From sequence record MW749003.1: a stretch of DNA of 64,000 bases. One strand, written 5' to 3'. Shown one piece after another: positions 3-57,800 of the stretch. A model generated the notes under the pieces. It searched no databases and was not told the origin of the DNA. It saw only the letters and a program-made list of their open reading frames with translations. Position numbers and translations under genes: made by a program. Within the stretch, counting starts at the first letter, position 1. Every line of letters begins with the position of its first letter.

Positions 3-3000
3 ATGTATGATTATTCTACTAGAAACCTAAGTTTTATTAAGATCTGGAAGTTTCTAAAAGATCAAGGTATAAAAAATAATAAATTCTTTTTAAAATTAAA
101 TGATGAAACATTACAGGGTGTTGATCCATATGATCCAAATTTAACTGATGAACAAAAGGTAAGAATACAGGTTGAAGTAATGACTAACTTTTGGTATTTC
201 TTAAGGGAAGTAGTAAGAATTCCTGAATCGGGCGGTTCTATTCATTTCATGTTACACAGAGCCAATCTTGGTCAAATGTTTCTTATGGAAAATAATATTG
301 ATATGATTGAAATATTACCTCGTCAGAATGGAAAAACTATCGGTGCAGTATGTCGTTATATATGGGTATATCATTGGGCTACCAAAAATACTCATATGAT
401 TTTTAGTAATAAACAATACGCCGATTCTCAATTAAATATTAAACGTTTTAATGATATAACTGAATTATTACCTAGTTATTTAAAGACTCATTTAGACCCT
501 AAAAAAGATACAAATAACTTAGCACAAATTTCATGTGCAAAAAACAATAATAAAATTGATGCAATGAGTACTGCTAGGACTGTTACTGACGCTGACAAAC
601 TGGGTTAACTAACTATGGCTCAGTATAAACTCCTTTAATTTCTGGAACGTCCTTCCAAGGATAATCAGAAGCTAAGACTTTTAAAAGTAAAGTTCAACGA
701 CTATCGAAACCGACTTATTAGATCGTTGTGATAACGCTAGATAAGGATAAGGGAGTAGAGTAGAATACAAGCTATAGGTATTCAAAAAGGGGAGCACCGT
801 ATTTAGGTGAAGATATAGTCTCATCTCTATGGTAACATAGAGCAGTTCATAAGAGAACGGTATAGGCGTAGCGAACCTATATGAAGGTAACTTGCGTGGT
901 TGTACAGTACCAATTATATGGTTAAATTTTTAGCCCATTATAATAGTGATATTATAATGAATCCTTCTTAACTGCTGGAACATCCTTTTAGGACAATCAG
1001 CATCCAAGCATTGTTATATAAATAACAATGAAGGTTCAACGACTATCGAAACCGACTTATCAGATCGTTGTGATAATGCTAGATAAGGATAAGGGAGTAG
1101 AGTACAACTCAAGCGATTGGAGTTGGAAATGGAAGGCATCTCAATGAGATGAAGATATAGTCTCATCTTCATGGTAACATGGAGCAGTTCATAAGAGAAC
1201 GGTATAGGCGTAGCGAATCTATATGAAGATAAATGATGATGAATTTGCATTTTTAAAATATAATGATACGGTATACGCTAAACTGGTGCAAACTGGCGTA
1301 TTAAAACTCTCTTAACTGCTGGAAACTCCTAAAGTCTTTAGTACCAAAGTGTAATAATCTAAAGGATATATGGACAATCAGCATCCAAGCATTGTTATAA
1401 ATAACAATGAAGGTTCAACGACTATCGAAAAATATAATTTGTATTATATTGAGTAGAGTACTTTCAAGCGAAAGGAAAAGGAGAGCATGATGAAGGTATT
1501 AAATACTGGAGTGAAGATATAGTCTCATCTCTATGGAAACATAGAGCAGTTCATAAGAGAACGCATTAGACGTAGCGAATCTAATGGAAGGTAATTATGA
1601 GTGCTGCACCAGCACTATCAAAAGCATCAGAAGCCGCACAGCGTAATGGTACTCCTTACGGAAAATTAATTACAACAACTCCTAAACTATTGGGCAATAC
1701 ATTAGTAATAATGTAATTGAATCTTCCTTAACTGCTGGAAACTCCTATATGGACAATCAGCATCCAAGCATTGTTGTTTATAACAATGAAGGTTCAACGA
1801 CTATCGAAACCACTCTAACAGATCGTTGTGATAACGCTAGTTAGAAGGAAGGGAGTAGAGTACAGCCTAAGTGATTGAGGTTGGAAAAGGGAAGCATCTC
1901 AATGAGATGAAGATATAGTCTCATCTTCATGGCAACATGAAGCAGTTCATAAGAGAACGCATTAGATGTAGCGAATCTAATGGAAGATAAATGAATGATC
2001 TTGATACAGAAATGGGTAAATATTGTAAGGGTATGATTGATGATGCATGTCCATTTGATGAAGCTTGGTATGATTGGGATATTGATGAAATTAAAAAATA
2101 TATTGAACAGAACTCTCGAAATGACTTTGTTTATTTAGTATTTAATTATAAAGAGTTAGGACATGATGACAAATGGTATCAAAAACAATGTCGTCAGCTC
2201 AATAATGATTTATTAAAAATTAAACGTGAAATATTATTGGAATGGACATTGGCTAACGATACTTCACCTTTTTCAGAGGAACAATTAGCAGAAATTGGAC
2301 AACATGCAGGTGAACCTATTGGTAAGTTTTATGTAATGAAAAGATATAAATTTGAAATTTTCAGTGAAATGCGAAATATATTTAAAAAATCATGGCTAAT
2401 CGGTATAGATATTGGGGCAGGTTTGAATCGAGATTTTACAGTGATATCTATTATTGATCCTAAAGATATGGTTCAAAAAGCAGTATTTAGAAGTAATAAT
2501 ATATCTTTGCCCGATTTAAAAGATTTGGTTATACACCTAGTATTAGAATTTTGTCCTAATGGTGTCATTATTCCAGAACGAAATAACTTAGGTATCTCTT
2601 TAATACAAGATCTACTACGTTCAGAAGTAGCTAATAACTTATATTATGAAGTTAGAGAAGTAAAGGGAGAAAAGAAAGTTGATGACCCAAAAAGATCATC
2701 TAAAAAGACAGTTAAGACTAAAACAAGAGTTTATGGGGTTACTACTAGTAAAGATAGTCGGGATATAATGATCAATGAGATTCTTAGTAATGCAGTTAAT
2801 GATACTCCACATGTGTTTACAAGTAAATATATTTTTGAAGAATTAAGAACATTAGAAAGAAATAAGAAAGGAAAGATTGAACATAGGGATGGAGGTCATG
2901 ATGATACATTATTCTCATGGCTAGTGGCATGCTATGCTTTCTTATATGGAAATAATATAAATAAATTTGTTAAAGTCATCAGTGATGGCGATAATAATGA

Positions 3001-3205
3001 GAATGAAGAAAATAATAAAGATAGAGCTAGAAATATTTATGCATTGTCTAAAATTAATACTGGTAAAAAATCACAGAGTGAGATATTATTAGAAATGTAT
3101 AAGAATGAAAGTAGATTTTTTGAAGATCATAATGAGAATGATAATAATATTAGAAAGCAAAAAAGAATGAAAAGCCTAAATTTTATTACTAGTTTAAATA
3201 GATAA
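3..3205 (+). CDS. terL: Terminase large subunit, spliced: join(3..605,895..922,1236..1279,1600..1683,1994..3205), 656 aa from the ATG at 3 (true start may lie upstream of the window)
   Basis: Walker A PRQNGKT in exon 1. Removing four introns gives one open frame (1971 nt) reading DKLG|RGCTVPIIW|YDEFAFLKYNDTVYA|SAAPALSK...ITTTP|NDLDTEMG, which restores Walker B (IIWYDE) and the TTP coupling motif. The C-terminal RNase H-like nuclease has IGIDIGAG and HDD motifs. Confidence 0.95.
606..894 (+). mobile_element. Group I intron terL-I1 (289 nt, ORF-less)
   Basis: Exon ends in U; P1 CUGGGU/GCUCAG with U.G. P4 UUCUG/CAGAA, R element UUCAACGACUA, S element AAGAUAUAGUCU, terminal G at 894. Confidence 0.93.
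923..1235 (+). mobile_element. Group I intron terL-I2 (313 nt, ORF-less)
   Basis: P4 UGCUG/CAGCA, R and S elements, terminal G at 1235. Splicing restores the W-Y-D-E Walker B codons (t+at = Tyr). Confidence 0.93.
1280..1599 (+). mobile_element. Group I intron terL-I3 (320 nt, ORF-less)
   Basis: P1 UACGCU/GGCGUA, P4, R and S elements, terminal G at 1599, frame restored. Confidence 0.93.
1684..1993 (+). mobile_element. Group I intron terL-I4 (310 nt, ORF-less)
   Basis: P4, R and S elements. The terminal G at 1993 is the G of the ATG that the ORF track used as a start. Junction reads ITTTP|NDLD. Confidence 0.93.
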
Positions 3206-3208
3206 ATG

Positions 3209-3242
3209 AAAGAATGTAGATGAAAATCTACATTCTTTTTTA
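3209..3242 (+). terminator. Intrinsic terminator after terL
   Basis: AAGAATGTAGAT/ATCTACATTCTT hairpin followed by a T-run. Confidence 0.8.
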
Positions 3243-3259
3243 TATTGAAGAGAATTACT

Positions 3260-3271
3260 AACAAATTCATA
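3260..3271 (+). promoter_or_regulatory. Late (non-virion RNAP) promoter AACA-N6-TA
   Basis: AACA aattca TA, matching the AR9 late consensus, upstream of the 3291 gene. Confidence 0.65.
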
Positions 3272-3290
3272 TGAATTTAATTAAAATTAG

Positions 3291-4085
3291 TTGACACATA
3301 TAGGAGGAAGTCTAATGGCTGAAATGATGGATGAACAAGAAGCAAAATTTTTAACAGATGAAGATATTGATCATGTAATTACATCTTTATCAGATGATAT
3401 TATTTTTGATAGTTTGAAAGAACAGATTAGCAATGTATTTGTACAATCTGATAGTAATCCAGTATACTATATTACTTATTTTACTGGTAAATATAATTAT
3501 ATTATGAATAAATATTCAGAGTATGAAGAAGTATGTGAAAAAATAAAAGAAATTAGAGAAGAATTTTATGAAAAACTTAAAACACTAATTGAAGAAAAAT
3601 TTGATTTTACATTAAATTTACCTGCATTCTTTGATGATGAAGAGAAGTTTAATATTATTGGGAACCTTTATGATTTCTTCATAATTAGAAATAAAGTAAA
3701 TTCAGTTAATGTTATCTCTGGATATATTGACAAAGAAATTAAGGATCTTATTAAATACTATAAACCTTTAATTGATAAAAAAGATCTTACCTATAATAAC
3801 ATCAAGAAGACTATTAATAAAGATATTGCAGTAATTATTTGTAAACTACCTGACATTATTTCAAATCTGACTGTGGAATCTGGTTTTGATCTAGTACAGC
3901 TAATGATAGATGATGAACAAGAAATTACGAATATGGTTATTGGTTCTTTATTTGATGAGAATACTGAATATATTAATATTGGAGAAAGCTTTATTGATAA
4001 TATTCTTAATGCTATTAAGAAAAATGAAGTATATTATTTGCAGGCTAGAACTCAATTAGTAAATAAATATTCAGATAAAAAATAA
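3291..4085 (+). CDS. Hypothetical protein, late class (likely start ATG 3315)
   Basis: Long ORF; GGAGG RBS before ATG 3315; late promoter. Confidence 0.8.
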   Translation: MTHIGGSLMAEMMDEQEAKFLTDEDIDHVITSLSDDIIFDSLKEQISNVFVQSDSNPVYYITYFTGKYNYIMNKYSEYEEVCEKIKEIREEFYEKLKTLIEEKFDFTLNLPAFFDDEEKFNIIGNLYDFFIIRNKVNSVNVISGYIDKEIKDLIKYYKPLIDKKDLTYNNIKKTINKDIAVIICKLPDIISNLTVESGFDLVQLMIDDEQEITNMVIGSLFDENTEYINIGESFIDNILNAIKKNEVYYLQARTQLVNKYSDKK

Positions 4086-4105
4086 ATTATTGGAGGACTA
4101 TATAA

Positions 4106-4816
4106 ATGGCAATTATTGATAGTAAAAATAATGATATGATTAAAACAATGAAAGGTCTTCAAGAAAGTTCAGAATCACTATTAAAAACTTTTAAAGATTT
4201 AGGTTTAGATAAAGAAAATAAAGAAGAGTTTGAAGAATTAGAAAAGTCTGCTAATGAAATTAAGCAAGAATTTGATACTATTGCTACGATTGAGGAAGAA
4301 GTTAAGAAATATTCTGGCTGTAGTGCTTTTATTAAACAGCTAGAAGAGGTTCTTGAAGATGATTCACAGAGTGAAGAATTAAAAGAAAAAATTAAGAGAC
4401 AGATTTTTATGATTAAAAGTAGTTATAATTTTAAAGCATTTAGTGAATTACAACCTACTTTAAAGCCTAAAACTTTACTTAATAATTATAAAGCATTACG
4501 AAATAAAGCTGAAAATAAATTAAAGAATAATGATACTTTCACATTTAATACATCCTTTTATTTAGAAAAAATGATTAAAGGAGTATTACCAGATGATTTG
4601 AAATCTTACTCTAGAATGACAGCATCATATATTTATGCTTTTATTAATACTGCTTCTCTTAAACGTGGTGGTTATGCTATCTTTGTTGGATTTTTAATTA
4701 ACAATATTAATAATTTAGATAAAGAGTATCCAGAAAAACAAGAACTTGTAGATAATCTTATTAAATTAACACAACTTTTAAAAGATGAATTGATTAGTAA
4801 TGCTAAATGGAAATGA
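4106..4816 (+). CDS. Hypothetical protein
   Basis: 236-aa ORF with GGAGG RBS, followed by a hairpin at 4830-4866. Confidence 0.8.
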   Translation: MAIIDSKNNDMIKTMKGLQESSESLLKTFKDLGLDKENKEEFEELEKSANEIKQEFDTIATIEEEVKKYSGCSAFIKQLEEVLEDDSQSEELKEKIKRQIFMIKSSYNFKAFSELQPTLKPKTLLNNYKALRNKAENKLKNNDTFTFNTSFYLEKMIKGVLPDDLKSYSRMTASYIYAFINTASLKRGGYAIFVGFLINNINNLDKEYPEKQELVDNLIKLTQLLKDELISNAKWK

Positions 4817-4874
4817 AATAAATAAAATGAGTAAACCTATATATTAAATTATATATAGGTTTACTTATTATTAA

Positions 4875-4886
4875 AACATAATATTG
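4875..4886 (+). promoter_or_regulatory. Late promoter AACA-N6-TG
   Basis: AACA taatat TG upstream of 4917. Confidence 0.6.
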
Positions 4887-4916
4887 AACTACTAAGTCAT
4901 GAAAGGAGTTTAACAA

Positions 4917-5663
4917 TTGAAATATAATTTTTTAAAGAAAGTTGATAATAAAATAATTTTTGATGGTGAATATATGGAAGTTTATATTCCTAAAGACTAT
5001 TTTTCAAAAGGAATTGCTAGTTATCATGGTGATATGGTGAATACATTAGGGGTTTTTAACTTTATGGTTTACACTCAACCAAAAGAATCCAAAAATAAAG
5101 GTGAGATTCATCTATTAAAGCTTCCTATGGAAATAAAGTTTGAATTTACAACATACCATGATATATCTACTAAATTAAGAGCAGACTTAGATAAGGACGA
5201 TTATAGAGTTTTTCAATTGGAAAAAGGCTCTGTATTCATTGATAATGTTATTAAAGAACAATCTGCTGAAAACAGTAAAAAATTTATTTACCTACTTCAT
5301 GGTGGAAAATTACCTAAATCACTAAAGTACAGTGATATAATTGACTTATATCATGAAAGTATCTCTTTAAATAAAGTAAAATTAAATAACCCATCAGTAA
5401 TATTTGAATTAATCATTGCTGAACTATGTCGCTATAGAAATAATACAGAAGTTCCATTTAGAATGATGATTGGTAAAGAGAATGCTAAAGTATCCGACTA
5501 TGACTATAATAATATAGCTCTTAAGAAATTACCTGCTATTAACTCAACATTTAATGCAATGACATTTGAAGATATTAACCAAGCCATTATATCTTCAATT
5601 CGTAAAACTCGTAATAATGAGAATGAAAATCCATCACCTGTAGAAAGAATAATTAAGTACTAA
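4917..5663 (+). CDS. Probable RNAP beta' C-terminal-fragment-like subunit (virion RNAP)
   Basis: C-terminal FELIIAELCR...STFNAMTFEDINQAII...SPVERII parallels SELIIREMMK...SLSRSLLFEQVKKQL...SSILDKLL in the 31421 beta' subunit. Confidence 0.55.
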   Translation: MKYNFLKKVDNKIIFDGEYMEVYIPKDYFSKGIASYHGDMVNTLGVFNFMVYTQPKESKNKGEIHLLKLPMEIKFEFTTYHDISTKLRADLDKDDYRVFQLEKGSVFIDNVIKEQSAENSKKFIYLLHGGKLPKSLKYSDIIDLYHESISLNKVKLNNPSVIFELIIAELCRYRNNTEVPFRMMIGKENAKVSDYDYNNIALKKLPAINSTFNAMTFEDINQAIISSIRKTRNNENENPSPVERIIKY

Positions 5664-5683
5664 AATTTTCTTATTTGTAAAAG

Positions 5684-5695
5684 AACATTTAATTA
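5684..5695 (+). promoter_or_regulatory. Late promoter AACA-N6-TA
   Basis: AACA tttaat TA upstream of the sheath gene. Confidence 0.7.
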
Positions 5696-5728
5696 ATGAA
5701 ATAAAGATTTCTGTAAAGGAGAGATAAA

Positions 5729-8692
5729 ATGGCTACTGAAGCTAGTACATCACAATCAATTTCTACTGGTACTGAAGTAAGTCCTACTTGGTTACACCCA
5801 AGCGTTACAAGTGTAATCAATAGTGAAGAGATCACTTATCAAAGTGGCTCTGGACAACAAAAAATGCTTTCTATCTTTACTTCTGAAAAAGGTGAAGATA
5901 ATAAACTAGTACTATATACTGATCCTGATGAATTTATTGCCAAAACTGGTAATCCAAATCTTAAAAAATATGGTCAATCAGCTTATAACATCATTAACTG
6001 GTTAAAGGCTGGTGGTGAAGTTTATGGTATGCGTGTAATGCCTGATAATGCAGGTTTTGCTCATGCATTCTTAAATGTTCTTTCTAAAGTTGATACTAAA
6101 AAAGTCAAGGATAAGGACGGTAATGCTGTTTCCTATAAAAATGTTACATTGAAACCAGCAGTTGCTTATTCAGATGTAAATAATGTATCTGAAACTCTAT
6201 TAAACTATGAATTAAACAAAGATAGATCTGCTGATGAGACTATTGATGGATTTAAGAATCATTTATTATTTGCAGTCTATCCTACAGGACGAGGAAGCGC
6301 ATATAATAACTTAGGGTTCCGAATTACTCTAAATACTTCTTATGATGAACAACATGATTTCCGTGTTTATAATTTTGAAGTAATTAGATATGATGAGTAT
6401 AATACTGCTAATATTATTGAAGGTCCATTTTATGTATCTTTAAGTCCTGACGCTCTTTCTTCATCTAATGAAAGTATGTTTATTGCAGATGTAGTTAATA
6501 AGTATTCTACTCATTTAAGATGTATGTTTAATGAAGATGCTTTCCTTGATCTTTGTCGTACTATTAATCCAGATGTTTCTCCATCTAAGATTGATCCACT
6601 AACAGGTAAGACAAGAACTGTTCGAGGTGTAGTTGATACTTTCTATAGTAACATTACTAAGAAATTTGAAGATACTCATATTTCTTTACATCGCTATGAT
6701 ACTAACGGAAATGTCATGACTGATTCTAATGATAATCCAATCTTGAATATTATTGATGCTGGTGATCTAATTGAGCAATCAATTCTATTGGCAGATAACA
6801 CTTATCGTAAACGTATGTATGAAAGATATCTTGCTGGTATCGATTATATGAAACAAGTGTTCAATAGTATTGAGAATAATGATTATAATACAATCATTAC
6901 TAAATTGCTTTATACTCCTGATGGTGTAACTCCTGAATCTGGTTTAATTCCAGAAATGGTTGAAAAGCTAAATGGTTATCATACTACTATTCAAAACCTT
7001 GTAACAGTATTTAATAGTAGTCATTTAGAATCAGATTTCAATCGGATTGTTACTGAAAATACTCTTGTTGAACAAGGTATTAAAGATATTATGAGTCTGA
7101 TTGGTCAACTTCTAAGTTACCATAAAGCATTAGAAATGAGTTCAACAGTCCTTGATCTAGATGAGAAAGTTAATTCTGTTTACAACAAGTTAAATCTTAA
7201 AGAGATTATTGATATCCGTGCAGTTTCTAAAAAAGATAAGATTAATGAAATTTCTGACACTATTCTTACTTTAAAAGGAACTGGTGATGAAGATGAACAA
7301 GCAAGTGCTTTAACTTCTATTCTTTCTGATATTAAAACAACTATTGATTATCTTCTTATGATCATCAACGAAAATTCTCTATCTGCTACAGATATTAATC
7401 AAGCAGTAACTCGTTATAATGCAATCATTGATATGTATAATGCTATCTTTGATCCAATTGTATCTAACGATGCGGCTAAAACTATTCTTGCTAATATTTA
7501 TAACAGTCTAGATGAATTAGTTGCAGATCTTTATAATATTTGTGAACTTGCTATCGTTAATATTGATTTACTTATTATTGATGATATTATTAGTAAGAAA
7601 ATTGCAAATATTGTATCTGGTATTGTTCCTGTAACATATACTAATACTGAATTGTATGCACAAAAGGTTTCTACAACTGAAGGCAAAGCTGAACTATTAT
7701 CTAGTATTCGTAAGAATATTGATAACTCTACAGCTGTTGTAACTGTGATGAAATCTATTGTTTATACTACTCAACTTCAAGATTTTAATTCTCCTGCTAT
7801 TTTTATGAATGGTAGTGATGGTGATCTTGATGAAAGTAATCCTACACTTAAGAGTAAAACTATGTTGAGCCTCCTAGTTAAAGGATACCAAGGATTAATT
7901 GATGATAGTGTTACTAATCGTAAAGTTGCTCCTTTCCAATTTGTATTAGACGCCAACTATCCAACAGATGTTAAGAATGCAATTGTTACATTGGCGAGAG
8001 ATATCCGTAAAGATATTTTCTTCTATGCAGATTCTGGTATTCAAGCTAGTCCTGCAGATGCTATTAGTTGGAGAAATGCTTCTTTCAATGTATCTTCCCA
8101 ATTCCTTGGAATTTATACTCAAGACTTCGTAGTTTATGATGAGTATAATGGAAGAGATATTAAAGTAACACCAACTTATTTCTTAGCTACTAAGATTCCT
8201 AGTGTTGCATCTCAATATGGATTGCAATATCCAATTGCAGGTAACAAACGTGGTACAATTGATGGATTTAAATCTATTAGTTATGTACCAAATGAATCTT
8301 ATAAGGAACAATTATATACTCGTCAGTTGAACTATGTAGAACATGATAGTAAACGTACTAAGTTTGGTAGTCAATTAACAGCTGATATGCAAAGAACTCC
8401 ATTGTCTAATATCAATAACGCTATCATTGCTCTTGATATCAAACGTAATGTTGAGGAAATGGCTGAAGATTATCAATTCGAGTTTGAAGATGATGAAACT
8501 ATCAGAACATTCCAGTACAATCTTAATGATTATCTATCTACCTACATTTCTAATAGAAGTTGTGATGAAATTTCTGCAACCGTATATGCATCTGATTATG
8601 ATAAAACTCAACAGATTCTTCGTGTTAAAATCACAGTTAAGTTTAAAGCGGTTGTTGAACGCATCGTAATTAGTATTGATGTAGTTAAGTAA
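5729..8692 (+). CDS. Contractile tail sheath protein
   Basis: 987 aa. Sheath-like N-terminus (GNPNLKKYGQSAY...GGEVYGMRV) and C-terminus (DANYP...IAGNKRG...LSNINN...FEFED). Followed by a tube-like gene. Confidence 0.88.
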   Translation: MATEASTSQSISTGTEVSPTWLHPSVTSVINSEEITYQSGSGQQKMLSIFTSEKGEDNKLVLYTDPDEFIAKTGNPNLKKYGQSAYNIINWLKAGGEVYGMRVMPDNAGFAHAFLNVLSKVDTKKVKDKDGNAVSYKNVTLKPAVAYSDVNNVSETLLNYELNKDRSADETIDGFKNHLLFAVYPTGRGSAYNNLGFRITLNTSYDEQHDFRVYNFEVIRYDEYNTANIIEGPFYVSLSPDALSSSNESMFIADVVNKYSTHLRCMFNEDAFLDLCRTINPDVSPSKIDPLTGKTRTVRGVVDTFYSNITKKFEDTHISLHRYDTNGNVMTDSNDNPILNIIDAGDLIEQSILLADNTYRKRMYERYLAGIDYMKQVFNSIENNDYNTIITKLLYTPDGVTPESGLIPEMVEKLNGYHTTIQNLVTVFNSSHLESDFNRIVTENTLVEQGIKDIMSLIGQLLSYHKALEMSSTVLDLDEKVNSVYNKLNLKEIIDIRAVSKKDKINEISDTILTLKGTGDEDEQASALTSILSDIKTTIDYLLMIINENSLSATDINQAVTRYNAIIDMYNAIFDPIVSNDAAKTILANIYNSLDELVADLYNICELAIVNIDLLIIDDIISKKIANIVSGIVPVTYTNTELYAQKVSTTEGKAELLSSIRKNIDNSTAVVTVMKSIVYTTQLQDFNSPAIFMNGSDGDLDESNPTLKSKTMLSLLVKGYQGLIDDSVTNRKVAPFQFVLDANYPTDVKNAIVTLARDIRKDIFFYADSGIQASPADAISWRNASFNVSSQFLGIYTQDFVVYDEYNGRDIKVTPTYFLATKIPSVASQYGLQYPIAGNKRGTIDGFKSISYVPNESYKEQLYTRQLNYVEHDSKRTKFGSQLTADMQRTPLSNINNAIIALDIKRNVEEMAEDYQFEFEDDETIRTFQYNLNDYLSTYISNRSCDEISATVYASDYDKTQQILRVKITVKFKAVVERIVISIDVVK

Positions 8693-21966: not shown

Positions 21967-22740
21967 TTGAATTGGTTTAAAAGAATGTTTATGGCAAAGG
22001 AGAAGGATAAGGAAATTGATTCACTAAGAAGGATGGTTGAACAGAGTAATGAAACTATTAAACTCATGGATGGTGTCATAAAAAGATTAGAGGATAATAT
22101 GACTAAATCCAGACAAGAATCAGCAGCAACTCTTCAGGAAGAAAAAGAATATCAAGATCAAATGAAATTGGAATCAGAAAGGATGCGGGAATATGAATAT
22201 ATTCAAAATGCTCAAAAAGTTGTTTCTACTTATTTAACTAAATATCTAGATCGTTTTAATCTAATTGAAAATCGTTTTTCACTTGCTCATAATATAGATC
22301 TTCTTTCTAATTCTGATGACTTAATGTTTAAAATTGTACAAATGATTAAATTGTCTAAGACAAGTGTTGAATTTGCTACTGTTTGGAACAATCATGTTAT
22401 AAGAATTAGTATTGATAATGATGAAGATGATGTATATTATAGTATTAATGGTGGAAAAAATCTAAGTTCCGACATTGTAGGAACCAAATTTCTTACTAAA
22501 TTTAAGAAGGATATCCAATTAGATATATTGAATTTTCCATGTGTTCAGACAAATAAGATTTACGAAGTAACTGGTAAAAAGTACAAGTATGTCTTAGCTA
22601 ACTCAAGAAGAGAATGTTATTATATACTTAAAGATAAAGAGATGAAAACAAAAATAAAAGAAGTTAGTTTTGTTGAACCAAGTGCATATACACGTTCTAT
22701 TAGATCTAGACTAGTATATGTAGTGCCTCATCAAACTTAA
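21967..22740 (+). CDS. Hypothetical protein with N-terminal coiled coil
   Basis: 257 aa; GGGGAGG RBS and TTG start. Confidence 0.8.
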   Translation: MNWFKRMFMAKEKDKEIDSLRRMVEQSNETIKLMDGVIKRLEDNMTKSRQESAATLQEEKEYQDQMKLESERMREYEYIQNAQKVVSTYLTKYLDRFNLIENRFSLAHNIDLLSNSDDLMFKIVQMIKLSKTSVEFATVWNNHVIRISIDNDEDDVYYSINGGKNLSSDIVGTKFLTKFKKDIQLDILNFPCVQTNKIYEVTGKKYKYVLANSRRECYYILKDKEMKTKIKEVSFVEPSAYTRSIRSRLVYVVPHQT

Positions 22741-22748
22741 TGCTTATA

Positions 22749-22782
22749 AGAGTAAAGTCTTTTATAGACTTTACTCTTTTTT
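22749..22782. terminator. Bidirectional terminator
   Basis: AGAGTAAAGTCT/AGACTTTACTCT plus T-run between convergent genes. Confidence 0.75.
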
Positions 22783-25700: not shown

Positions 25701-26778
25701 TAAAGTTACGTCCTAGTTCTTCTCTATATAATGGAATAGGAATTTCATTCCCCTTATCATCTTTAATCATTAAACTATTAAAACGACTTTCAATAGACTT
25801 AATGTATAATGAGATCATCTTTTTAACTGCTTCCTCAGAAAATTGTTCTCTTATATTACTAATAGTTATCTCTTTTCCATTATGCTTAAATTTACTAAGT
25901 TCTGATTCACGTTCAAGAATATAATCTTGGATATATTTAAGAAAGAATGGATAAAATTCTACCACTAATTGTGATAGGGGAATACCTGTCCATCCAAATC
26001 TAATAGGGTTATCCTTCCAGCTATTTGACTTAAATCGTGGTGCTGAGATTACACTACGAGTTGCATAATCAACAGATTTACCTAAAGAGTTTTGATGGAA
26101 CATACCATTTTTACCAGCTAAAGAGGATGTAAAATAGTCATAGATATCATATAAAAGAGTCTGAATAGATGATTCTGTTATTACTCCCATAAAATCATAA
26201 TCTTCACCCTTAGAAATTGATTGGCTATACCTAATTAATTTAGCATATTTGTCATTCACTTCATCAACAGCTTTAATCGTATCATTAGAAGATTTTGAGG
26301 GATTATAATCTCTATAAAATGCTGGAATCACTAAATATTTGTCAATAAATATATCATCCTTACCAAGTTTATTTAATAATGTAAGATAACTTGTTCGTCT
26401 ATCAGTTCCAGTATTACTAAATTTTAATTGGTCGTAAATAGTATAAAAATAGGTAACTCCAGTTTTACCATTATCTTTATCTTCAACTAACTTGCCGCCC
26501 TCAACTTTAAAATATTTCTTTCCAGATAGACAATCTGCAATTTTTCGATCCATAGAGGTTAGAAGCTTATAAATTACTGGATGGAGAAATTTTCTCTTTA
26601 AGTCTATATAACCGAAAATTATTTTTCTTTCTTTACTTCCCGGATAACCAAAAATACTAGTTGAAAATAATCCATCTTCAGTTGGTATATTTCCCATATT
26701 AAAGTAAATCGGATTTGTTACTTCTTTACATGCATGAGAAGTAATAAATTTATCTATATTTAATGTATCTATTTTCAT
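22783..26778 (-). CDS. Multisubunit RNAP beta' N-terminal (catalytic) subunit, probably virion RNAP, spliced: complement(join(22783..22944,24834..25018,25614..26778)), 503 aa
   Basis: GLFSTSIFG, GKSVDYATRSVI and TRYP motifs. The spliced frame (1512 nt) reads TRYPIEQY|QNIYPSKI...NGYLKALGGDYD|GDTVSLRG, restoring the DxDGD catalytic motif. The late promoter at 26801-26812 fits a packaged enzyme. Confidence 0.92.
22945..24833 (-). mobile_element. Group I intron (1889 nt) with a homing endonuclease gene in the P1 loop, inserted in the DYD|GD active-site motif
   Basis: Exon end CUACGAU pairs with GUCGUAG (23254-23260). P4, R and S elements and the conserved 3' module lie at 22945-23250; terminal G at 22945. 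Confidence 0.93.
23270..24754 (-). CDS. Intron-encoded homing endonuclease: Zn-finger repeats + Vsr/EDxHD-like nuclease + C-terminal Mom-like GNAT domain
   Basis: Three H/C-xx-C...RCPxC repeats; EIDIFIP...FEFNGLYWH; ELSRFAT...ITYADRRWSDGNVY. Own late promoter at 24779-24790 and GGAGG RBS. Confidence 0.8.
   Translation of the reverse strand: MPRKKTLDEFKEEVKLLTNNTYTVLSNEYINNKTKIKLRHELCGNIYEVRPDIFHNGSRCPQCADINKGKSRLKSNDEFKKELKEKTNGRLISLEKYINIDTKILFRCNDCNYEWKTTPYYALKNRCPQCSGKRRLTTDEVKRKISLVTNNEYSLLGEYRNNKTKIRLLHHSCNKEYEVTIKNFNNGNRCPYCAFKSSSKMEKELSSFIKGLVVDKVICNDRKLLEGKEIDIFIPSKKIAFEFNGLYWHSEQMGKKRNYHLEKLEKCNSKGIRLIQIFEDEWVNKPLIVKEKIRHLLKLNNSTKIYARNCYVEVIDNNFKNEFLERNHIQGKDLSSIKLGLWLPKEDGDELVAVMTFSKLRKSLGRNSVDNIFELSRFATDMDYRVIGAFSKLLKYFERNYEWKELITYADRRWSDGNVYINNKFELSHISKPNYWYVNVEKTQRFHRFNYRKSNLKKKFPKLYSDNSTEFEIMDKTRFKRIWDCGNLVFTYKR
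25019..25613 (-). mobile_element. ORF-less group II intron (595 nt, IIB/bacterial class B-like)
   Basis: 5' end GUAUG; D1 closure UGACGUUC/GAACGUCA; ~25-nt D4 hairpin; D5 ACGCCUUAUGCGGUGAAAGUCGCACGUAGGGUGUG (CGC triad, GAAA loop); D6 ending CCUAUCACUAU. Excision restores the frame (c+ag = Gln). Confidence 0.9.
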
Positions 26779-26868
26779 TTAAATTTCCCTCCTATTATTA
26801 TAATAATTTGTTAACGGTTTAAGAGAAATGAACAAAAAAAAAAATATGAAGGGATTAACCTTCATATT

Positions 26869-45709: not shown

Positions 45710-45710
45710 A

Positions 45711-49437: not shown

Positions 49438-49439
49438 TA

Positions 49440-49983: not shown

Positions 49984-50030
49984 AAAATAAAGGATAGAGA
50001 TAATTTAATCTCTATCCTTTATTTTTTTTT
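49984..50030. terminator. Bidirectional terminator
   Basis: AAGGATAGAGAT/ATCTCTATCCTT with A/T tails between convergent genes. Confidence 0.75.
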
Positions 50031-51759
50031 TTGTATACTTAAAAACTAAATTTCCACAATCCCAAATTCTATCATAACCAGCTTCTCTCATAATTTGAAT
50101 TTCTGTTTTATCATTACTATAAATTTCTGGAAATAATTCTTTTAATCTTTGTTTTCTATAGTTGTATCTATGTGAAAGACTCAATTTATTTTTATTAAAA
50201 TACCAATAATTTGGCTGAGAATTATGCATAAAGTGAAAGTTATTTTTATAATATACATTTCCTTCTGACCATCTTAAATCAGCATATGTTATGATGTTAT
50301 TCCAATCATAATTCTTTTTAAAATAACTGAATAATTTTCCAAAACTACCTATTACATTATAGTCTCTTTCTGTAGCAAATCTACTTAATTCATAGTCATA
50401 TTTATTCCCTTTTTGCCCTAAGCTAACTCTAGGTTTACAGAATGTCATTACTGCTACTAACTCATCACCCTCATTCCTTGGATACCATAGTCCCAGTTTA
50501 ATAGTAGAGTTATCAGATCCCTGAATATGATTTTTATCTAAAAATTCTCTTTTCACATTATTCTGAATTTCTTTTATATAACATTTTCTAGCATATATTT
50601 TTTCTCCATTATTTAAACCTAAAATATGTTTTATCTTTCCCTTTATAAGTTCTTTATTATCAATCCACTCATTCTCAAATAAATGAATTAATCTTATACC
50701 TTTTTCATTACATTTTTTCAATTTATTTAGATGGTAGTTTCTACCTTTTCCTTGAGATTCACCATGCCAATATAAACCATTATATTCAATTGCTATTTTC
50801 TTTGAAGGTATATAAATATCCAGTTCTAAACCTTCAAGTATTTTTCTGTCTGATAGAATTACATTAGTGCTATTGGGGAGAATTTGTTTAATATAATCAT
50901 ATAATTCAATCTCATCTTTTGAATTATGTTTCTTTAGTTGACATCTAGGACAATCTCTTTTAACTTTTTTACCTCTTGAATTACCATGTAAAATATCGAC
51001 CGGTCTAACCTTCCAAGAATAGCCACATGAATGCTCAATAACTATTGGAGTTTTATTATTAATATATCTACTCTTAATTGTATAATCATTACTATTAAAT
51101 ATTCTATAAAAATCTTCTTTAAAACCATTAGATCCTTTATTTTTTGGATTTTTATTACATATATTACACCTTTTTCTTTTTAGGAAATTAGTTGGTGTAA
51201 TAAAGAAATTATGAGAATCACTAGTATTGTGTCTCATCTCAATTTTATCTTGAGAGCTAATATATTCTCCTAATACAGTATATTCATCTCCTACTAAATC
51301 ATACACTTCTTTAATAAACATTTCAGTAGTCTTTGTCTTTTTCCTTTTTATTAGTTTCTTAGTACAATCAGGACATCTTGAACCCTTACTGAGAAAGTCA
51401 TTAGGTCTTTTTTTAAATTCCTTATTACAGATGTTATGTCTAAGTAATACTAGTTCAGAACTATTAATATATTCTCCTAATACAGTATATTCATCCCCTA
51501 CTAATTCATACACTTCTTTAATAAACATTTCAGTAGTCTTATTTTTTCTTTTAGATATTCTTTCTGATTTATGTAAAGGACATCTATTACCTGCATTTAA
51601 AAAGCCATTTGGTGTGACATAGTATTCATGACTGCATTTTTCATGTTTCATTTTTATTTTATTATTAGTTCCAGTATATTCTCCTAATACAGTATATTCA
51701 TCCCCTACTAATTCATACACTTCTTTAATAAACATTTCAGTAGTCTTCTTTTTAGGCAA
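50005..51759 (-). CDS. Free-standing homing-endonuclease-like protein: Zn-finger array + Vsr/EDxHD-like nuclease + Mom-like GNAT (likely TTG start 51759)
   Basis: Paralog of 23270-24754 (ELDIYIPSKKIAIEYNGLYWH; ELSRFAT...ITYADLRWSEGNVY). It lies outside any intron, after the beta gene stop. The start was chosen by the AAAGGA RBS and similarity to MPRKKT. Confidence 0.8.
   Translation of the reverse strand: MPKKKTTEMFIKEVYELVGDEYTVLGEYTGTNNKIKMKHEKCSHEYYVTPNGFLNAGNRCPLHKSERISKRKNKTTEMFIKEVYELVGDEYTVLGEYINSSELVLLRHNICNKEFKKRPNDFLSKGSRCPDCTKKLIKRKKTKTTEMFIKEVYDLVGDEYTVLGEYISSQDKIEMRHNTSDSHNFFITPTNFLKRKRCNICNKNPKNKGSNGFKEDFYRIFNSNDYTIKSRYINNKTPIVIEHSCGYSWKVRPVDILHGNSRGKKVKRDCPRCQLKKHNSKDEIELYDYIKQILPNSTNVILSDRKILEGLELDIYIPSKKIAIEYNGLYWHGESQGKGRNYHLNKLKKCNEKGIRLIHLFENEWIDNKELIKGKIKHILGLNNGEKIYARKCYIKEIQNNVKREFLDKNHIQGSDNSTIKLGLWYPRNEGDELVAVMTFCKPRVSLGQKGNKYDYELSRFATERDYNVIGSFGKLFSYFKKNYDWNNIITYADLRWSEGNVYYKNNFHFMHNSQPNYWYFNKNKLSLSHRYNYRKQRLKELFPEIYSNDKTEIQIMREAGYDRIWDCGNLVFKYTKKKIKDRD
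51261..51747. repeat. Three 73-bp near-identical direct repeats, 207-bp period (51261, 51468, 51675)
   Basis: Each encodes KTTEMFIKEVY(E/D)LVGDEYTVLGEY. Two copies are identical; the third differs at 2 positions. Confidence 0.9.
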
Positions 51760-51780
51760 AACAATCATCCTTTTATATAA

Positions 51781-51820
51781 ATTGGATTTCAACTATTATT
51801 TTGTTTAGTTGAAATCCAAT
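51781..51820 (-). promoter_or_regulatory. Late promoter AACA-N6-TA forming the loop of a perfect 15-bp inverted repeat
   Basis: Arms ATTGGATTTCAACTA and TAGTTGAAATCCAAT; the loop 51796-51805 is AACAAAATAA on the minus strand. Confidence 0.65.
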
Positions 51821-51838
51821 TTGTTTATCAATAAAAAA

Positions 51839-54800
51839 TTATTCTGAATATATTTTACCAATTTCTCGTTTAAGATGTACTAATGCTTTGTTTAAATATA
51901 GAGCATTATAAATATCAACGGTCATGCGTGAAACAATACTCAATGGACTCATAATAGCTTCAATATTCTCATCTGGATCATTCTCACTAAAAGGCTCTTG
52001 ATCTTTAGGAATAACATCAGATACAATTGTTTTAAGTGCTGTATAATACGTAATCTTATCTCCAATACCAAGTTCATCATCATACTCAATATAAATCTCA
52101 ATGAGTAGTCCGTCTACTTCAGTACCTTTAATTTTCTCACCTGATTGCTTTTGAATAGGTTTAAGATTAACAGAAGTCAGATCATTAGTAACAGACTTAA
52201 TCTTATCTTCTTTCTTCTTACTATCTTTAATATAGTTCTTCAGAATCTTTTGTACTGAAGGAGAAAACTCACTGATATCTTTATTGTAGTACATTACAAC
52301 ATCTACAATCTTACCAGTATATTTAGAACTTACTTTGTTCTTAGATAACTCATTAATAGTCTCATTAAAGTCATCTCCTAGTTTATCTAAGAGTTGGTTG
52401 AGTGATTTATCTTCAAAGGAGTTTTCAAAGATAATCAATGGATCACCAGTCTTAACCATATCGCCTTTCTTAACAATAAAGTCAATGTTTGAGTTAACTC
52501 CAAGAGCAAGTTCTTTCTTCATAGTAATTTTAGTAGATAGGTCTTGAGATAAGCTTTCTGTAATAATACTACTATCTTCATAAGTGTAATCTGCGCTTGC
52601 TAGTGCTACTTTACAAAGCTTCCCTGTAGTATACGTGATATCATCTTTCTTATCGCCAAGGAAGTAACTTGGATTCTTCGCTAGGATATCATCTTTTTTG
52701 AATTTCTCTCCTACTTTGATAATGAGTTCTTTACGATTAGCAATGTAAACAATTATCTTCCACCAAATTCGCTAGTTTTGGTGCGCCCTCTAACGGACTG
52801 CTCCATGTTACCATGAAGTTGAGACTATATCTTCAAAGTTCCCTGTTTCCCAGTATACATAAATAAAAGTATACCAGATTTCATCTCAGAAACCTGCCAC
52901 CAATCGCTTGTGGGGTACTCTACTCATCTTTATTAATAAGATTTTCGATAGTCGTTGAACGTTCTCTATTAGTTTAATAGAGCTTCGCTTCTGATTATCC
53001 TTTTAATAAGGACTTCCCAGAAATTAAAGGAATTTAACGTGAGCCTTTAAACCCACCATTACTATTCTTACTCATATGCTCGGAGAGATCAATGACGTCT
53101 TTCTTACCATCATTATAACGAACGACAGCTAGCTCATGTTCTTCATCTATGGACTCTAGAACTCCATCTTTTTTTGCTCTAAACACAAAGTCGTCACTTA
53201 GAATATAAGCAACAGTCTTCTCTACACCACTACCAAATAGAGGTTTAGATTGCTTTGTGGTAGGAATGATCGTTAACTTCCATTAGATTCGCTACGTCTA
53301 ATGCGTTCTCTTATGAACTGCTCTATATTTCTATAGAGACGAGACTATATCACTATCCTTAATAATTAAGGATAACTCCCATTTCCATTTAAGGGATTCT
53401 CACCCACTCCAAACACTTGAGCCGTACTCCTATTGCGGAATTTCACCGCTACTCACAATCCTAAGATTGCTTTCGGATAGTCGTTGAACTTTATTCAAAA
53501 GTTTTCTTTAAGTATTCTTCTAGATTACTTAACTGTGTATAATTGAATCTGAATAGTTTATAACCCTTTCTTTTACAATACTCATTTTTTAGATTATCAC
53601 GGAATTGTATATCCTCTAAGCCTTCTTCTCCACCAAAAAAATCAGATGGCTTAAAATGTTGCTTACCATCATATTCAACTAATATTTTAGTTCCGTCCTC
53701 ATCTTCAAAATAGAAATCAAATCGTAATCTTCTTCCTGTTTTTGGATTAACTAAGTCTGAAAATGATTTTTCAATTTCAAAGTAGATATTATTCTGGTTG
53801 AAATAATTAGTAATAATTTGAATCCCACTAGAATTTCTTCCAATTCCATTACTACAATGAGGACATCTGTACCCTAAAATAAAGTTATTTGGCTTTATCT
53901 TAAAAGTTTTTTCACATTTTCCATGATATAATGTAACATGTTTGTGAGCATGGGTATATTCATTTGTTAGAGAATATTCATTACCAACCAATTCATAAAG
54001 TTTTTCTTTAAATGTCTCTGTAGTTCTTTTTTTAGTTTTAGCACAATTTGGACAACGATAACCAGAAAGAAAATTTACAGGTAATACAGAATATTCATTA
54101 CCGCATTTGTTATGTCTCATCTTAACGTGAGTCATATTGTTTATATATTCAGAAGTAGGTTTATATTCATTACCGACCAATTCTTCAACTTTTTTTCTAA
54201 AATCAGAATCGGTTCTTTTTTTATTTTTAGCACAATTTGGACAACGATCTCCTCGTCTGATAAACTGATATGGTTGAACCTTATATTCATTACCACATTT
54301 ATTATGTCTAAATAAAATTTTAGTATGCTGTGCTAAAAATCTTCCTAATACCACATATTCATCACCAGTTAATTCTTTTACTTTCTTTACAACTTCCATA
54401 TGTTTTTTATTCAATAAACAAATTGGACATTTAGTTACTTTATTTTTCTTAAAGAAACTATCTGGTCTCATTTCAAATGTACTATCGCATACTTTATGAT
54501 AAAATATAGCATTTATAGTTGATGATATATATTCTCTAACTTCAAATTCATTATTATATACATCTTTTAATCTTCTAGAATAAACTTTACTTAACATATT
54601 ACACCCTCCGACAAACAGTTGTAATAATATGTTAAATTATTTAAAAACTATTTTGAATATTAGCTGCTGATTCTCCAATTCTATTAGTTTTCAAACCTTC
54701 ACGCTTATTATTTCTAATTACGTTGTGGTCTAATAGACTCTAAGGAATTTCCAGCAATTAGAGAGTTTATCTAATAGTATTACTACTATTAGGCACGAAT

Positions 54801-57800
54801 CATGCTTTTGTTGGGTACTCTGCATGCCTACTCGTGGAGGATCAGCATGCCTTACTGTAAAGGAGTTCAATAATTCTGCTGGACCATAGATATTTGTCGT
54901 GTTATTTTTTGTATTAGGATTGGTGTCTAAGAATCCTCGTGTGTTTTTAAATGCTGGATCAAAAGTTAACTGTCTAACCCATTATCTTCATATAGGTTCG
55001 CTACACCTATACCGTTCTCTTATGAACTGCTCCATGTTACCATGAAGATGAGACTATATCTTTATCTAGTCAAAAAAAAAGAAAGGAGATGACTAGATAT
55101 CTCCCATTTCCATTTAAGGGATTCTCACCCACTCCAATCGCTTGAGCCGTACTCCTATTGTGTGTTAACCACTAAAGGATAGTCGTTGAACGTTACTCTC
55201 GTTATAATTAAAAATAATTTATAAAATTATTATTTTATTTTTTCCATAATAGTAGCTCTCCTTTTTAACTTACTACTATTATAATATATTTAACGAGAGT
55301 CTTCGATACGGATTGTCCTATTATTAGGAGTTTCCCGTAGTTAGAGAGATTTTATCATTATATATCACTATATAAGGGGGCAGTTTAATTCACCCCAACT
55401 TTCATTATCTTCCACTAGATTCGCTACATCTAATGCGTTCTCTTATGAACTGCTCTATGTTTCCATAGAGATGAGACTATATCATCATCCTATTAGGATG
55501 CCTCCCATTTCCAACTCCAATCGCTTGAGTTGTACTCTACTCCCTTCCACTAACTAGCGTTATCACAACGATTTGTTAGAGTGGTTTCGATAGTCGTTGA
55601 ACCTTACTCTAATGAGTCTTGGATGCTGATTGTCCTTAAAGGATTTTCCAGCAGTTAAAGAGGTTTACTTATAATATTTCTATTATAAGGGACTATTATA
55701 AATCTTGTCTGGAAATTCAAGAATTATAATAATTCAATCCGAGTCGGGCGTTGACATTGCCATGATTCCACGCATACTAGGGTCATAAGCTCGAATATCA
55801 GTTGTATAAGCATCCGTTTTCCTTCATATAGGTTCGCTACACCTATACCGTTCCTTAGAACTGCTCTAAGTTTCCTTAGAGACGAGACTATATCATCACT
55901 TAAAAAGTGCCTCCCATTTCCAGCCTCAATTGCTTAGGCTGTACTCTACTCCCTTCCTACTAACTAGCGTTATCACAACGATCTGTTAAAGTGGTTTCGA
56001 TAGTCGTTGAACCTTTACCTTATTACAAATAATTTGTAACTTAGGTACTTGGTTGCTTATGATTACCCAATCCTTTAAATTTTTACCATACCTGAATTGT
56101 TATATTCAGCCATCTATTATGTTTCCATATAGATTTGGTATTAAAGGCTCTAAGGGTTTTCCAGCAGTTAAAGAGGTTTTAATTGGACTAAAACACTTTA
56201 ATCCAAGTTCCTTCCTGAAAGCCCCTTGTAAGTAGCCGCACCACCCTTTTCAATTTCCAAAGAAGGGTTAAGGACACTATATTCATCGACAGTAGGTGAA
56301 TTCATTAATGTCTTTAATAGAATATCCTGTGGAACAGACATCTTAATAGGATTACCAGCTTTCAGTGTATCCTTATACGTTTTAAATGAATCTGCCAAGA
56401 TTTTATATAGATAAGCATTTACTTGCTCAGTACCACGGATTCGATATGAATTCATATCATTCAGTGGACTATAGCTCATATCTTCCAATAAGGTATTCGC
56501 ATACAACAATATGTCATAGATATTCTCAGGTAATTCTAACTGTTTCAGCACATCTAATGTGATAGGATCAACCATTAGAGATAGAGTATTGTGAAGACCT
56601 TTACCCATATTTCTACTACCGAACATCTCATAGAAAGTCTCAATATAAGGATCTTTAGAGTTCATTTCTTCAAATGCATACTCTTCAGTAGCCATAGTAC
56701 TTAGACCACTTAATAATAGGGAATTTCTCAATAAAGAATTATTATAATATAGGTATCCATCTTTAAAACGGATCTTATCATAGTCATCATCAATTGTAAT
56801 TCTCTTATTTTTAGTATCAAAGCTATATTCAATATTATATCTTTCTAATAAATCTTCTAATCCTAATTCATATCCAAGAAGAACCACTAGAGGGATCATT
56901 CTATTATTAATACGAACTCGGTTATATGCTAGAGACTTAGAATTACTTAAAGAAGATAATTTTTTATAAGCTTCCTCACTAAGTGAAGTGACAACAACTT
57001 TAATAATGAGTTCTGAAAGACTCATATCAGTATTTTCTTGTTTCTTATTATTAATCAGATAAACTCTTTTACTTGAACGATTAAGAGCAATAACGTTTTC
57101 ATTATCTTTTGTATGACCGATTGGTAAGAATTGTTTATCATCAATATTAATCTTAGCAAGCTTAGCCATATTATCAAGATCACTTTTCAATAAATCTTCT
57201 ACTTCTTTTTGACTGAACATAAGTTTATATTCATCATTCTCTAAGCTTAGAAGGAAAGAAGAAATCTCATTATATTCAAGAGTTGTTTCATAACCCTCAT
57301 TAATTGTTAGAGCGTTACCTAGGCGATAATTAAACTTCTTACCTGATACCTTAAATTCATTTAAATCCATACCAAAGAGTTTCTTAAGTTTCTCAGTTTT
57401 ATGAGATAATTTAGAACCAAAGCGCATGACAAAAAACTTATTGTAGTTAGTAGTAATCTGAACTTCATCAGGTTTTGTTTTTACAATGGGCAAAGATAGA
57501 ATTTGCTTAAGAATTAATTTTTTACCACCATTAATATTCATAAACCTACCATCTCTGATAATAGGATAATCAAATTTAACAGTATGCTTTACATTACGAT
57601 CATCTTGGAAAGTAACAGTATAAGTTAATTTTTTTGATAAATCAGTAGATGTGTCTTCTGTTTTAATATCACTTACAAATAATTTAACATCGCTATCTCC
57701 ATTAAATGATGAAAGAACTGCAACTAAGTCTTTTTTCATCTGTTTTTCAAAGTAGCTCATATCAAAATCTTTGAGATTTGAATATCTAGTTTCTTCTTGA

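Follow-up and report, generated by a model that had tools for sequence, protein, structure and literature searches.

A mosaic family of group I introns in essential genes of the Bacillus jumbo phage Internexus, probably shaped by exchange between phages and between insertion sites

The first 64,000 bases of the genome of Bacillus jumbo phage vB_BspM_Internexus (MW749003.1, 252,262 bp; genus Takahashivirus, AR9/PBS1 group), the stretch that was analysed here and is called the window (bases 1-64000), contain three genes that are interrupted by group I introns: terL, with four, the beta'-N gene of the virion RNA polymerase (RNAP), with one, and the virion-RNAP beta-N gene, with five. Over positions 1-8000 and 22500-27000 the window matches the record with 100% identity. 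The genomes of phages AR9 and PBS1 are ~98% identical to the window at the nucleotide (nt) level. Our comparison phages throughout were Goe21 (host B. subtilis; exons ~97-99% identical to those of Internexus) and, as a second and more distant relative, BpSp (host B. pumilus; ~70-75% identical to Internexus). Introns were called with the Rfam covariance model RF00028 at its gathering cut-off of 50 bits. Nine of the window's introns scored above it (69.6-104.4 bits), and the tenth, the fourth intron of the beta gene, scored 45.4 bits because an inserted open reading frame (ORF) lies between its 5' part and its core.

Intron boundaries were set from the intronless alleles of Goe21, together with the requirement for a U at the end of the 5' exon and a G at the end of the intron (for beta, the sequences of Goe21, AR9 and BpSp were combined). 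Spliced in this manner, terL is 1971 nt in length, exactly as is the terL ORF of Goe21, with differences at 3 of 657 amino acids (aa); beta' encodes 503 aa with three differences from its Goe21 counterpart; and the six exons of beta join into a single ORF of 1397 aa. The AR9 annotation presents the orthologous genes as joins of five (terL), six (beta) and three (beta') pieces. The 5' exon of every intron ends in T, the intron itself in G, and a P1 helix of 4-10 bp is found in all ten (for beta' and beta-I4 it was identified by eye). The pairing of P9 and P9.2 is upheld by compensatory changes in 12 of 25 pairs, and the Rfam alignment of terL-I4 contains an insert of ~82 nt between P7 (5' strand) and P3' (3' strand), at the spot of the P7.1/P7.2 elements of subgroup IA. 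We predict from these features that all ten introns are group I ribozymes that function by self-splicing, and their architecture, which resembles that of T4 td, makes the phage subgroup IA2 the probable assignment.

The terL introns lie on the plus strand at 606-894 (terL-I1, 289 nt, 82.6 bits, with boundaries from Goe21 terL), 923-1235 (terL-I2, 313 nt, 93.5 bits), 1280-1599 (terL-I3, 320 nt, 69.6 bits) and 1684-1993 (terL-I4, 310 nt, 81.2 bits), and none of them contains an ORF. The guide of terL-I1, UGGCUCAGU, pairs with the exon end ACUGGGU↓ (where the arrow, here and below, marks the splice site). The intron terL-I4 is 98% identical to its orthologues in AR9 and PBS1. All of the remaining introns are on the minus strand. 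The beta' intron (22945-24833; 85.5 bits on its core; boundaries from Goe21 rpoC1) contains an ORF, which lies downstream of the 5' splice site and upstream of the guide GUCGUAG. In the beta gene, beta-I1 (55815-56200; 386 nt, 70.2 bits) has the guide UUUAGUCCAA, which pairs with UUGGAU↓UAAA; beta-I2 (55403-55736; 334 nt, 104.4 bits) has the guide UAGUCC, which pairs with GGAU↓UG; beta-I3 (54980-55391; 412 nt, 74.4 bits) is without an ORF in Internexus, as are beta-I1, beta-I2 and beta-I5; beta-I4 (53271-54801; 1531 nt, 45.4 bits on its core) contains an ORF at 53491-54597; and beta-I5 (52750-53050; 301 nt, 76.3 bits), which is not present in Goe21, has the guide GGCUCAC, pairing with GUGGGU↓U.

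These introns are placed in the most conserved motifs of essential genes. The four in terL fall within 160 nt of coding sequence, separated by exons of 28, 44 and 84 nt (the 28-nt micro-exon, at 895-922 on the plus strand, lies between introns 1 and 2), and the stretch that they interrupt, GRGCTVPIIWYDEFAF...TTTPND, comprises what we take to be the Walker B and coupling motifs. The beta' intron divides the catalytic aspartate motif (DYD↓GD). Introns 2 and 3 of beta are separated by a micro-exon of 11 nt (55392-55402, minus strand), and Goe21 has an endonuclease-containing intron at a third position inside that same stretch (about 5598-6975 of Goe21 piece L006), between the beta-I2 and beta-I3 sites; three insertion sites are therefore found within 11 nt. 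In the deposited Internexus record, terL and the two RNAP genes are not joined, and exon fragments appear as separate coding sequences (CDSs) alongside spurious small ORFs in ribozyme cores. The affected CDSs are INTERNEXUS_2, 3, 26, 27, 67 and 69 (1597-1716, 1749-1844, 22783-22947, 23124-23222, 53034-53186 and 56053-56235).

The ten introns belong to a family that extends well beyond the window. Scanned with default Rfam settings at 150 kb per piece, the 188 kb of Internexus that lie beyond the window returned no group I intron at the gathering threshold, and searches of the same 188 kb by blastn and by nhmmer with a family-core profile (E values down to 1e-56 for the profile) located 12 further family introns. 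The Rfam negative is a filter or insert artefact (ORF-less introns are among the copies that it missed), and the annotation lesson is that default scanning overlooked every one of the 12 family introns beyond the window. They interrupt a virion protein gene (two introns), the non-virion (nv) RNAP beta'-N gene, dnaB (two), recD, gyrB, the gene for the HD-domain subunit of the virion RNAP (two), the nv-RNAP beta-C gene, the ligase gene and the prohead protease gene, which brings the family to 22 copies in at least 12 genes. An initial, sequence-only reading of the window had counted ten introns as one family, a number that is right for the window and that understates the family itself. The paralogous virion and non-virion beta' genes both have a family intron in the DxDGD motif, at sites 3 nt apart (DYD↓GD and DYDG↓D); the nv-beta' intron is at about 129138-129473 of the record, on the minus strand, and carries an HNH endonuclease gene in AR9 that is missing from the Internexus copy.

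Close relatives differ greatly in how many of these introns they have. AR9 has 16 copies and Goe21 has four in the ~86% of its genome that the census covers. The introns of AR9, which were reportedly already published by Lavysh in 2016 (in Virology 495:185), are these same elements, each of the ten window introns having an orthologue there at the same site. What distinguishes Internexus from AR9 is a different endonuclease content at common introns and six additional family introns (two in dnaB and one each in recD, gyrB, nv-beta-C and ligase). In Goe21, eight of the ten window introns are missing, beta-I4 is present, and one intron at a site of its own replaces beta-I2 and beta-I3; its terL, rpoC1, rpoC_2, recD2, gyrB, HD-domain subunit, rpoB_1, ligA and protease genes are uninterrupted.

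Among blastn matches from outside the genus, the best to terL-I4 extend over no more than 45% of it (the 3' part, P7-P9), at 72-81% identity. An exact-pattern scan of IMG/VR with a 20-mer from the P7.1/7.2 element of the family, which would detect exact matches only, yielded AR9 as the only genuine hit; three further loci with that 20-mer proved to be chance matches in coding sequence. As judged from these searches, the family is confined to the PBS1/AR9/BpSp phage genus (Takahashivirus), and the view that the introns form a single family holds in this lineage-restricted form, with similarity far above the non-genus background.

The relationships within the family are mosaic. The sequence-only reading had pointed to a pair of introns in unrelated genes, terL-I4 and beta-I1, that differ at 6 of 102 positions (1791-1892 on the plus strand and 55912-56013 on the minus strand). 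We confirmed that observation, and the alignment is gapless. The block corresponds to P7/P7.1-7.2 and is not covered by any blastn match outside the genus. Identity between the two introns is 38-52% in the 5' part and rises to 94% in the central block, against 73% towards the 3' end (Fisher p=5e-5), and whole-core identity among the ten introns ranges from 58 to 84%. A P4 subtype (UUCUGG/CAGAA) common to terL-I1 and beta-I5, also noted in that reading, is present as described, and the intron hydA is a third with the UUCUGG form of P4. Alternative modules are found as the P5 extension, the P6 loop, P7.1/7.2, the insert between P7.2 and P3', and the P9.2 hairpin.

When five segments were typed separately for their nearest paralogue, each intron switched partners between segments. 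For the beta' intron the closest is terL-I4 in P7.1/7.2 (96%), the nv-beta-C intron in P3'-P8 (87%) and dnaB-I1 in the tail (100%), and for beta-I4 it is, in turn, hydA (96%), dnaB-I1 (91%) and terL-I3 (100%). The P7.1/7.2 module of terL-I3 is itself unlike that in the other terL introns. The module states are pairwise incompatible with a single tree; the two types of P7.1/7.2 and the two main types of tail, for example, occur in all four combinations. The possibility that introns of the same gene are each other's closest relatives was considered and fails in general: core identity averages ~77% within terL and ~67% within beta, and terL-I4 is 83.2% identical to beta-I2 and 83.7% to its best partner in terL, terL-I2.

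Introns of different genes also have stretches of identical sequence in common. One of 102 nt, whose borders fall sharply at the two ends of the P3-P5 domain, is common to the second HD-subunit intron (hydB) and the protease intron; others of 81 nt and 73 nt are common to beta-I2 and the second virion-protein intron, and to the beta' and nv-beta-C introns. In a PHI-like test of the ten window introns, none of 1000 permutations reached the observed compatibility of nearby sites.

The cores group by phage lineage, and the guides by site. In a core tree the Internexus and AR9 orthologues pair, and the eight introns of BpSp form one cluster (two label changes, a number as low as which was seen in 0 of 500 shuffles). 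An approximately unbiased (AU) test rejected clades defined by insertion site (p=0.0017 for the I4 site and p=0.013 for the I5 site) and did not reject a BpSp clade (p=0.42). Intron trees that follow host-gene site and phage phylogeny, which the sequence-only reading had named as the outcome that would speak against it, were thus not what we obtained. The BpSp intron at the I4 site nevertheless shares splice site (aagcat↓) and guide (GUGC) with its counterparts there and has a P2 like theirs, and at the I5 site BpSp has ggtgggt↓ as splice site, GCUCA as guide and P4 in the rare UUUCUGG form. A three-way alignment of beta-I4 from Internexus, AR9 and Goe21 shows the same directly among close relatives: P1-P2 and the last ~230 nt are in common, whereas the P3-P6 module is of a different type in Internexus, where it accompanies an ORF of 368 aa (the AR9/Goe21 intron is 353 nt long and without an ORF). 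We read this as long-held sites at which ribozyme modules may have been overwritten from other members of the family. Clustering by genome and not by locus, mosaic blocks, and identical tracts between paralogues, as expected of a repeat family in concerted evolution by gene conversion, are all found here. In sum, the shifting nearest paralogues, the shared exact tracts and the BpSp-type cores at shared sites make recombination among the introns well supported.

These data also bear on the idea that the introns were acquired independently and resemble one another because the IA2 core is constrained, or that they are ancient site-specific insertions with vertical descent only. The J6/7-P7 and J8/7-P7' strands are indeed common to the introns of unrelated phages, at 72-81% identity. 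The tracts of 94-100% identity, on the other hand, are in the peripheral P7.1/7.2 and P5 extension, which are wholly different in other members of the family and unmatched outside the genus, and neither the rejection of site clades nor module histories that do not fit one tree would be expected from independent acquisition or vertical descent. We consider such an origin hardly credible.

We turn now to how whole introns have moved between phages. Comparison of the terL exons with Goe21 revealed 57 differences, of which 44, nearly all synonymous, are within spliced positions 200-800 around the intron cluster. The four terL introns look like part of a co-conversion tract of ~600 nt, as would be expected for import from a diverged terL allele. 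The beta'-N gene also contains an ORF-less group II intron (25019-25613, minus strand; 80.5 bits with RF02004 and 55.1 bits with RF00029), which is outside the group I family, and the 185-nt exon between the two introns is 82.7% identical to Goe21, as against 98.8% for exon 1. (A beta' gene with both a group I and a group II intron has already been described; PMC12350094.) At every other junction compared, 2-10 differences are found within 15 nt on either side, where a divergence of 1-2% in the exons would give ~0.5. At the site of the first terL intron, the intronless Goe21 allele reads GGA and Internexus reads GGU↓, and the splice-site U therefore travels with terL-I1. Intron-plus and intron-minus alleles in close relatives and co-conversion of the flanks, the two signs of homing-type movement, are thus both present, and recent movement between phages looks like allele exchange at the DNA level.

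Copying within the genome left no comparably recent trace. Orthologues in AR9 and Internexus are 0.3-2.9% apart (97-99.7% identity), whereas paralogues reach 70-89% identity in their best matches, which span 93-345 nt (190-345 nt in the better ones), and no pair is above 89% over 190-300 nt. The six Internexus introns absent from AR9 were searched for a fresh copy, and none was more than 89% identical to a resident intron; the many near-identical full-length copies expected of an element resembling a miniature inverted-repeat transposable element (MITE) were not seen, near-identity being found only within modules. Given the distance between paralogues and the co-conversion tract in terL, recent copy-and-paste inside Internexus is unsupported. 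The sequence-only reading had proposed that the family spread within the genome by ectopic transposition (reverse splicing or recombination of ribozyme cores) with re-adaptation of the guide, or by ongoing gene conversion. Gene conversion and core recombination fit best, given the module mosaic, the result of the permutations, the tracts of 73-102 nt and the swapped P3-P6 module of beta-I4. A recent spread inside this genome does not: the terL introns are inside a tract of clustered synonymous differences, which argues against insertion there de novo, and the six introns lacking in AR9 are not near-copies of residents.

The insertion sites are biased in sequence. GGU↓ precedes the intron at 11 of the 21 defined sites, against 4.0% of T positions in the host exons as background (p=9e-11), and GGGU↓ does so at six, against 0.47% (p=5e-10). 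Conserved glycine codons may contribute to the excess of GGU↓, although hardly to the extent of thirteen-fold. Three groups of introns also have guide and target in common: terL-I1, beta-I5 and hydA, the three with P4 UUCUGG, have the guide GGCUC and the target GGGU↓U; beta-I1 and beta-I2 have the guide UAGUCC and the target (C)U(U/C)GGAU↓U; and the nv-beta' and gyrB introns have the target AUGACGGU↓. This points to new sites having been taken where an existing guide already fitted. The earlier suggestions of guide re-adaptation, and of P1 and guide as the only site-specific segments, do not agree with these groups, nor does the latter agree with the variation in other modules.

Such a pattern invites the explanation that the family multiplied mainly by retrotransposition at the RNA level and is still doing so. 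New sites complementary to the guide of a donor, as reverse splicing would require, are what we see in the three groups and in the enrichment of GGU↓ and GGGU↓; most copies are ORF-less; introns are tightly clustered within single transcripts (the four in terL being the extreme case); and several that are absent from Goe21 have flanking exons that are 98-99% identical overall. Reverse splicing would also call for flanks without co-conversion and for an available reverse transcriptase (RT). Differences cluster at all junctions compared and, like the 600-nt tract in terL, resemble DNA-level co-conversion. AR9 is reported to lack an RT (Internexus itself was not searched for one), which weighs against the classical route, and the phage's group II intron carries an endonuclease and not an RT. 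Only guide-compatible insertions would splice and survive, including those made at the DNA level, and the target pattern is therefore silent as to RNA or DNA, while near-identical full-length paralogues are lacking. We believe RNA-level retrotransposition to be quite improbable as the main and continuing route. Very doubtful, too, is that ORF-less members still colonise GGU↓ sites by means of their guide, by reverse splicing into transcripts or, more speculatively, into single-stranded deoxyuridine-containing DNA (the target U in the DNA of this phage is chemically the same base as in RNA). If that were true, ectopic transposition of group I introns could be observed for the first time in a tractable system, AR9 and Goe21 on Bacillus subtilis 168.

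Endonuclease genes are present in a minority of the introns. In the window, eight of ten introns are ORF-less, in accord with the description 'mostly without endonucleases' in the sequence-only reading, and two contain an ORF (seven or eight of 22 genome-wide); an intron that homes in the strict sense carries its own endonuclease gene, a description that, among the ten in the window, fits those two alone. The beta' intron ORF (23270-24754, minus strand; 494 aa), annotated as a 'Hef-like homing endonuclease', contains CapR repeats and a DUF4379 zinc finger (Pfam) and is 98.6% identical to AR9 g146 (blastp). The beta-I4 ORF (53491-54597, minus strand; 368 aa) is in the same CapR/DUF4379 family, as is a free-standing ORF directly downstream of the beta gene (50005-51792, minus strand; 595 aa), which is 47% identical to the beta' intron ORF. 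In AR9, g188 is annotated as a 'Hef-like homing endonuclease', and g265 is a further free-standing endonuclease gene. All of the intron ORFs and two free-standing ORFs form one protein family, with 27-48% aa identity by blastp. According to Merk et al. (2025, NAR, PMC12350094), the CapR-type proteins of AR9 and PBS1 form a new outgroup of the EDxHD/Vsr homing endonucleases. In the BpSp beta gene, the introns at L008 2027-2347 and 4187-5504 contain annotated ORFs (gp249, gp247 and gp246) on the strand opposite to the host gene, which is unusual for intron endonucleases.

Endonuclease genes have been gained and lost at fixed introns. Those found in AR9 only are in beta-I3 (HNH-AP2), the nv-beta' intron (HNH) and the group II intron of beta'-N, where g147 encodes a VSR-type endonuclease of 302 aa and the Internexus copy is ORF-less; those found in Internexus only are in beta-I4 and two virion-protein introns. 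CapR endonucleases might cut the conserved ribozyme DNA of ORF-less members, with repair copying the endonuclease gene together with adjacent modules and so generating the mosaic. Variation in endonuclease presence at the same intron between phages that are ~98% identical is what such invasion would produce. In six introns with an ORF, the extended P4-P5 module immediately precedes it, and the difference between beta-I4 of Internexus and its AR9 and Goe21 counterparts takes in both module and ORF. The ORFs, though, are 27-48% identical and their neighbouring modules 77-100% (aa and nt identity), hence they have no single recent history, and recent joint travel of the two is weakened as a proposal. 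The modules of the 3' tail, far from the ORFs, are shuffled too, and the cleavage specificity of the CapR endonucleases is putative. Invasion of this kind is, in our estimation, unlikely to be what created the mosaic.

The explanation that we favour, and regard as probable, is that one genus-restricted family has been shaped by three processes: allele exchange, conversion of modules between introns, and guide-constrained colonisation. Each copy sits after a U, usually in GGU↓, inside a conserved motif of an essential gene, with its 5' guide pairing with the end of the exon. Co-infecting relatives would gain and lose whole intron alleles by homologous recombination or homing, with flanking exon dragged along, and intron content would consequently come to differ greatly among phages that are ~98% identical. 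Within a lineage, homology-driven gene conversion would swap P3-P6, P7.1/7.2, the insert before P3', P9 and P9.2 between sites, so that cores would become alike in each lineage while P1-P2 would stay tied to the site. Over the longer term the family would colonise new sites, preferably ones that match an existing guide. The CapR/zinc-finger endonucleases, intron-borne and free-standing, are the likely source of the DNA breaks that such a scheme would require.

Several observations weigh against this combination of allele exchange, module conversion and colonisation. The four terL introns are ORF-less and have no endonuclease gene nearby, and the disparity between endonuclease and module identities means that movement of endonucleases alone does not explain the homogenisation. 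No exchange event was caught in the act among the compared genomes, and the 102-nt tract of hydB and the protease intron, being 99-100% identical in AR9 as well, predates or equals the split between AR9 and Internexus. The PHI-like statistic is open to inflation by covariation of paired RNA positions and is supportive only; extended to 20 introns, it was significant with windows of 20 and 80 columns and not significant at 40 (651 of 1000 permutations). Finally, loss of an intron from its site followed by re-invasion is a possible alternative source of the clustering by lineage.

Parts of this picture resemble systems that are already known. Phage Twort is likewise reported to have several similar ORF-less IA2 introns packed into one gene with small exons between them; Internexus differs in having 22 copies in at least 12 genes, module mosaicism, lineage-specific homogenisation, and close relatives with 4 to 22 copies. 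For the group I introns of nuclear ribosomal DNA (rDNA), spread to new sites has been attributed to reverse splicing (Bhattacharya et al. 2005, PMC1299323; PMC3984707). Related introns at different sites and targets of a few bases complementary to the guide are common to both systems, circumstantially in each, but the Internexus introns reside in protein-coding genes of a DNA phage without a known RT, and co-conversion and module swaps indicate the DNA level. Trans or collaborative homing of ORF-less introns has been described for T4 mobE with the nrdB intron (PMC2790892) and for cyanophage psbA (PMC3984707). Here, too, ORF-less introns are found beside free-standing endonuclease genes of the same family, one of them directly downstream of the five-intron beta gene; the differences are that the targets of the CapR proteins are putative and that terL is remote from any such gene. 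In the Bastillevirinae, 45 introns from 37 species form nine clades with barely detectable similarity between clades, again in essential genes of Bacillus phages and with nuclease type decoupled from ribozyme clade (PMC11878797), whereas the single genome of Internexus holds 22 copies of one clade. A family-wide mosaic, a target bias and a contrast of 22, 16 and ~4 copies were not described in the literature surveyed, which did not include Lavysh 2016.

Two other interrupted genes of Internexus were observed. The gyrA/topoisomerase IV-A gene (record 192315-193127) is interrupted by ~810 nt in which neither the family profile nor Rfam finds a match; in AR9 the gene is annotated as a join of three pieces, Goe21 has a 335-aa ORF at the same place, and the insert may be an intron of a different type. 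An AAA ATPase gene (record 224341-225916) is present as two CDSs in Internexus and as one ORF of 1647 nt in AR9 and Goe21. At the junction ~68 nt of the Goe21 gene are unmatched in the blastn alignment and no intron is visible, and the split could be due to a deletion, a frameshift or a sequencing error.

The elements themselves are of a known kind, and we regard their evolutionary pattern as a moderately interesting and testable extension of what has been described. The route by which group I introns arrive at new sites is recognised as an unsettled matter. The family offers a natural experiment on it, in that one type of ribozyme is found at more than 20 sites with a GGU↓ signature, common guides and visible swapping of modules, and culturable relatives on a laboratory host, with exons that are ~98% identical, carry 22, 16 and about 4-5 copies.

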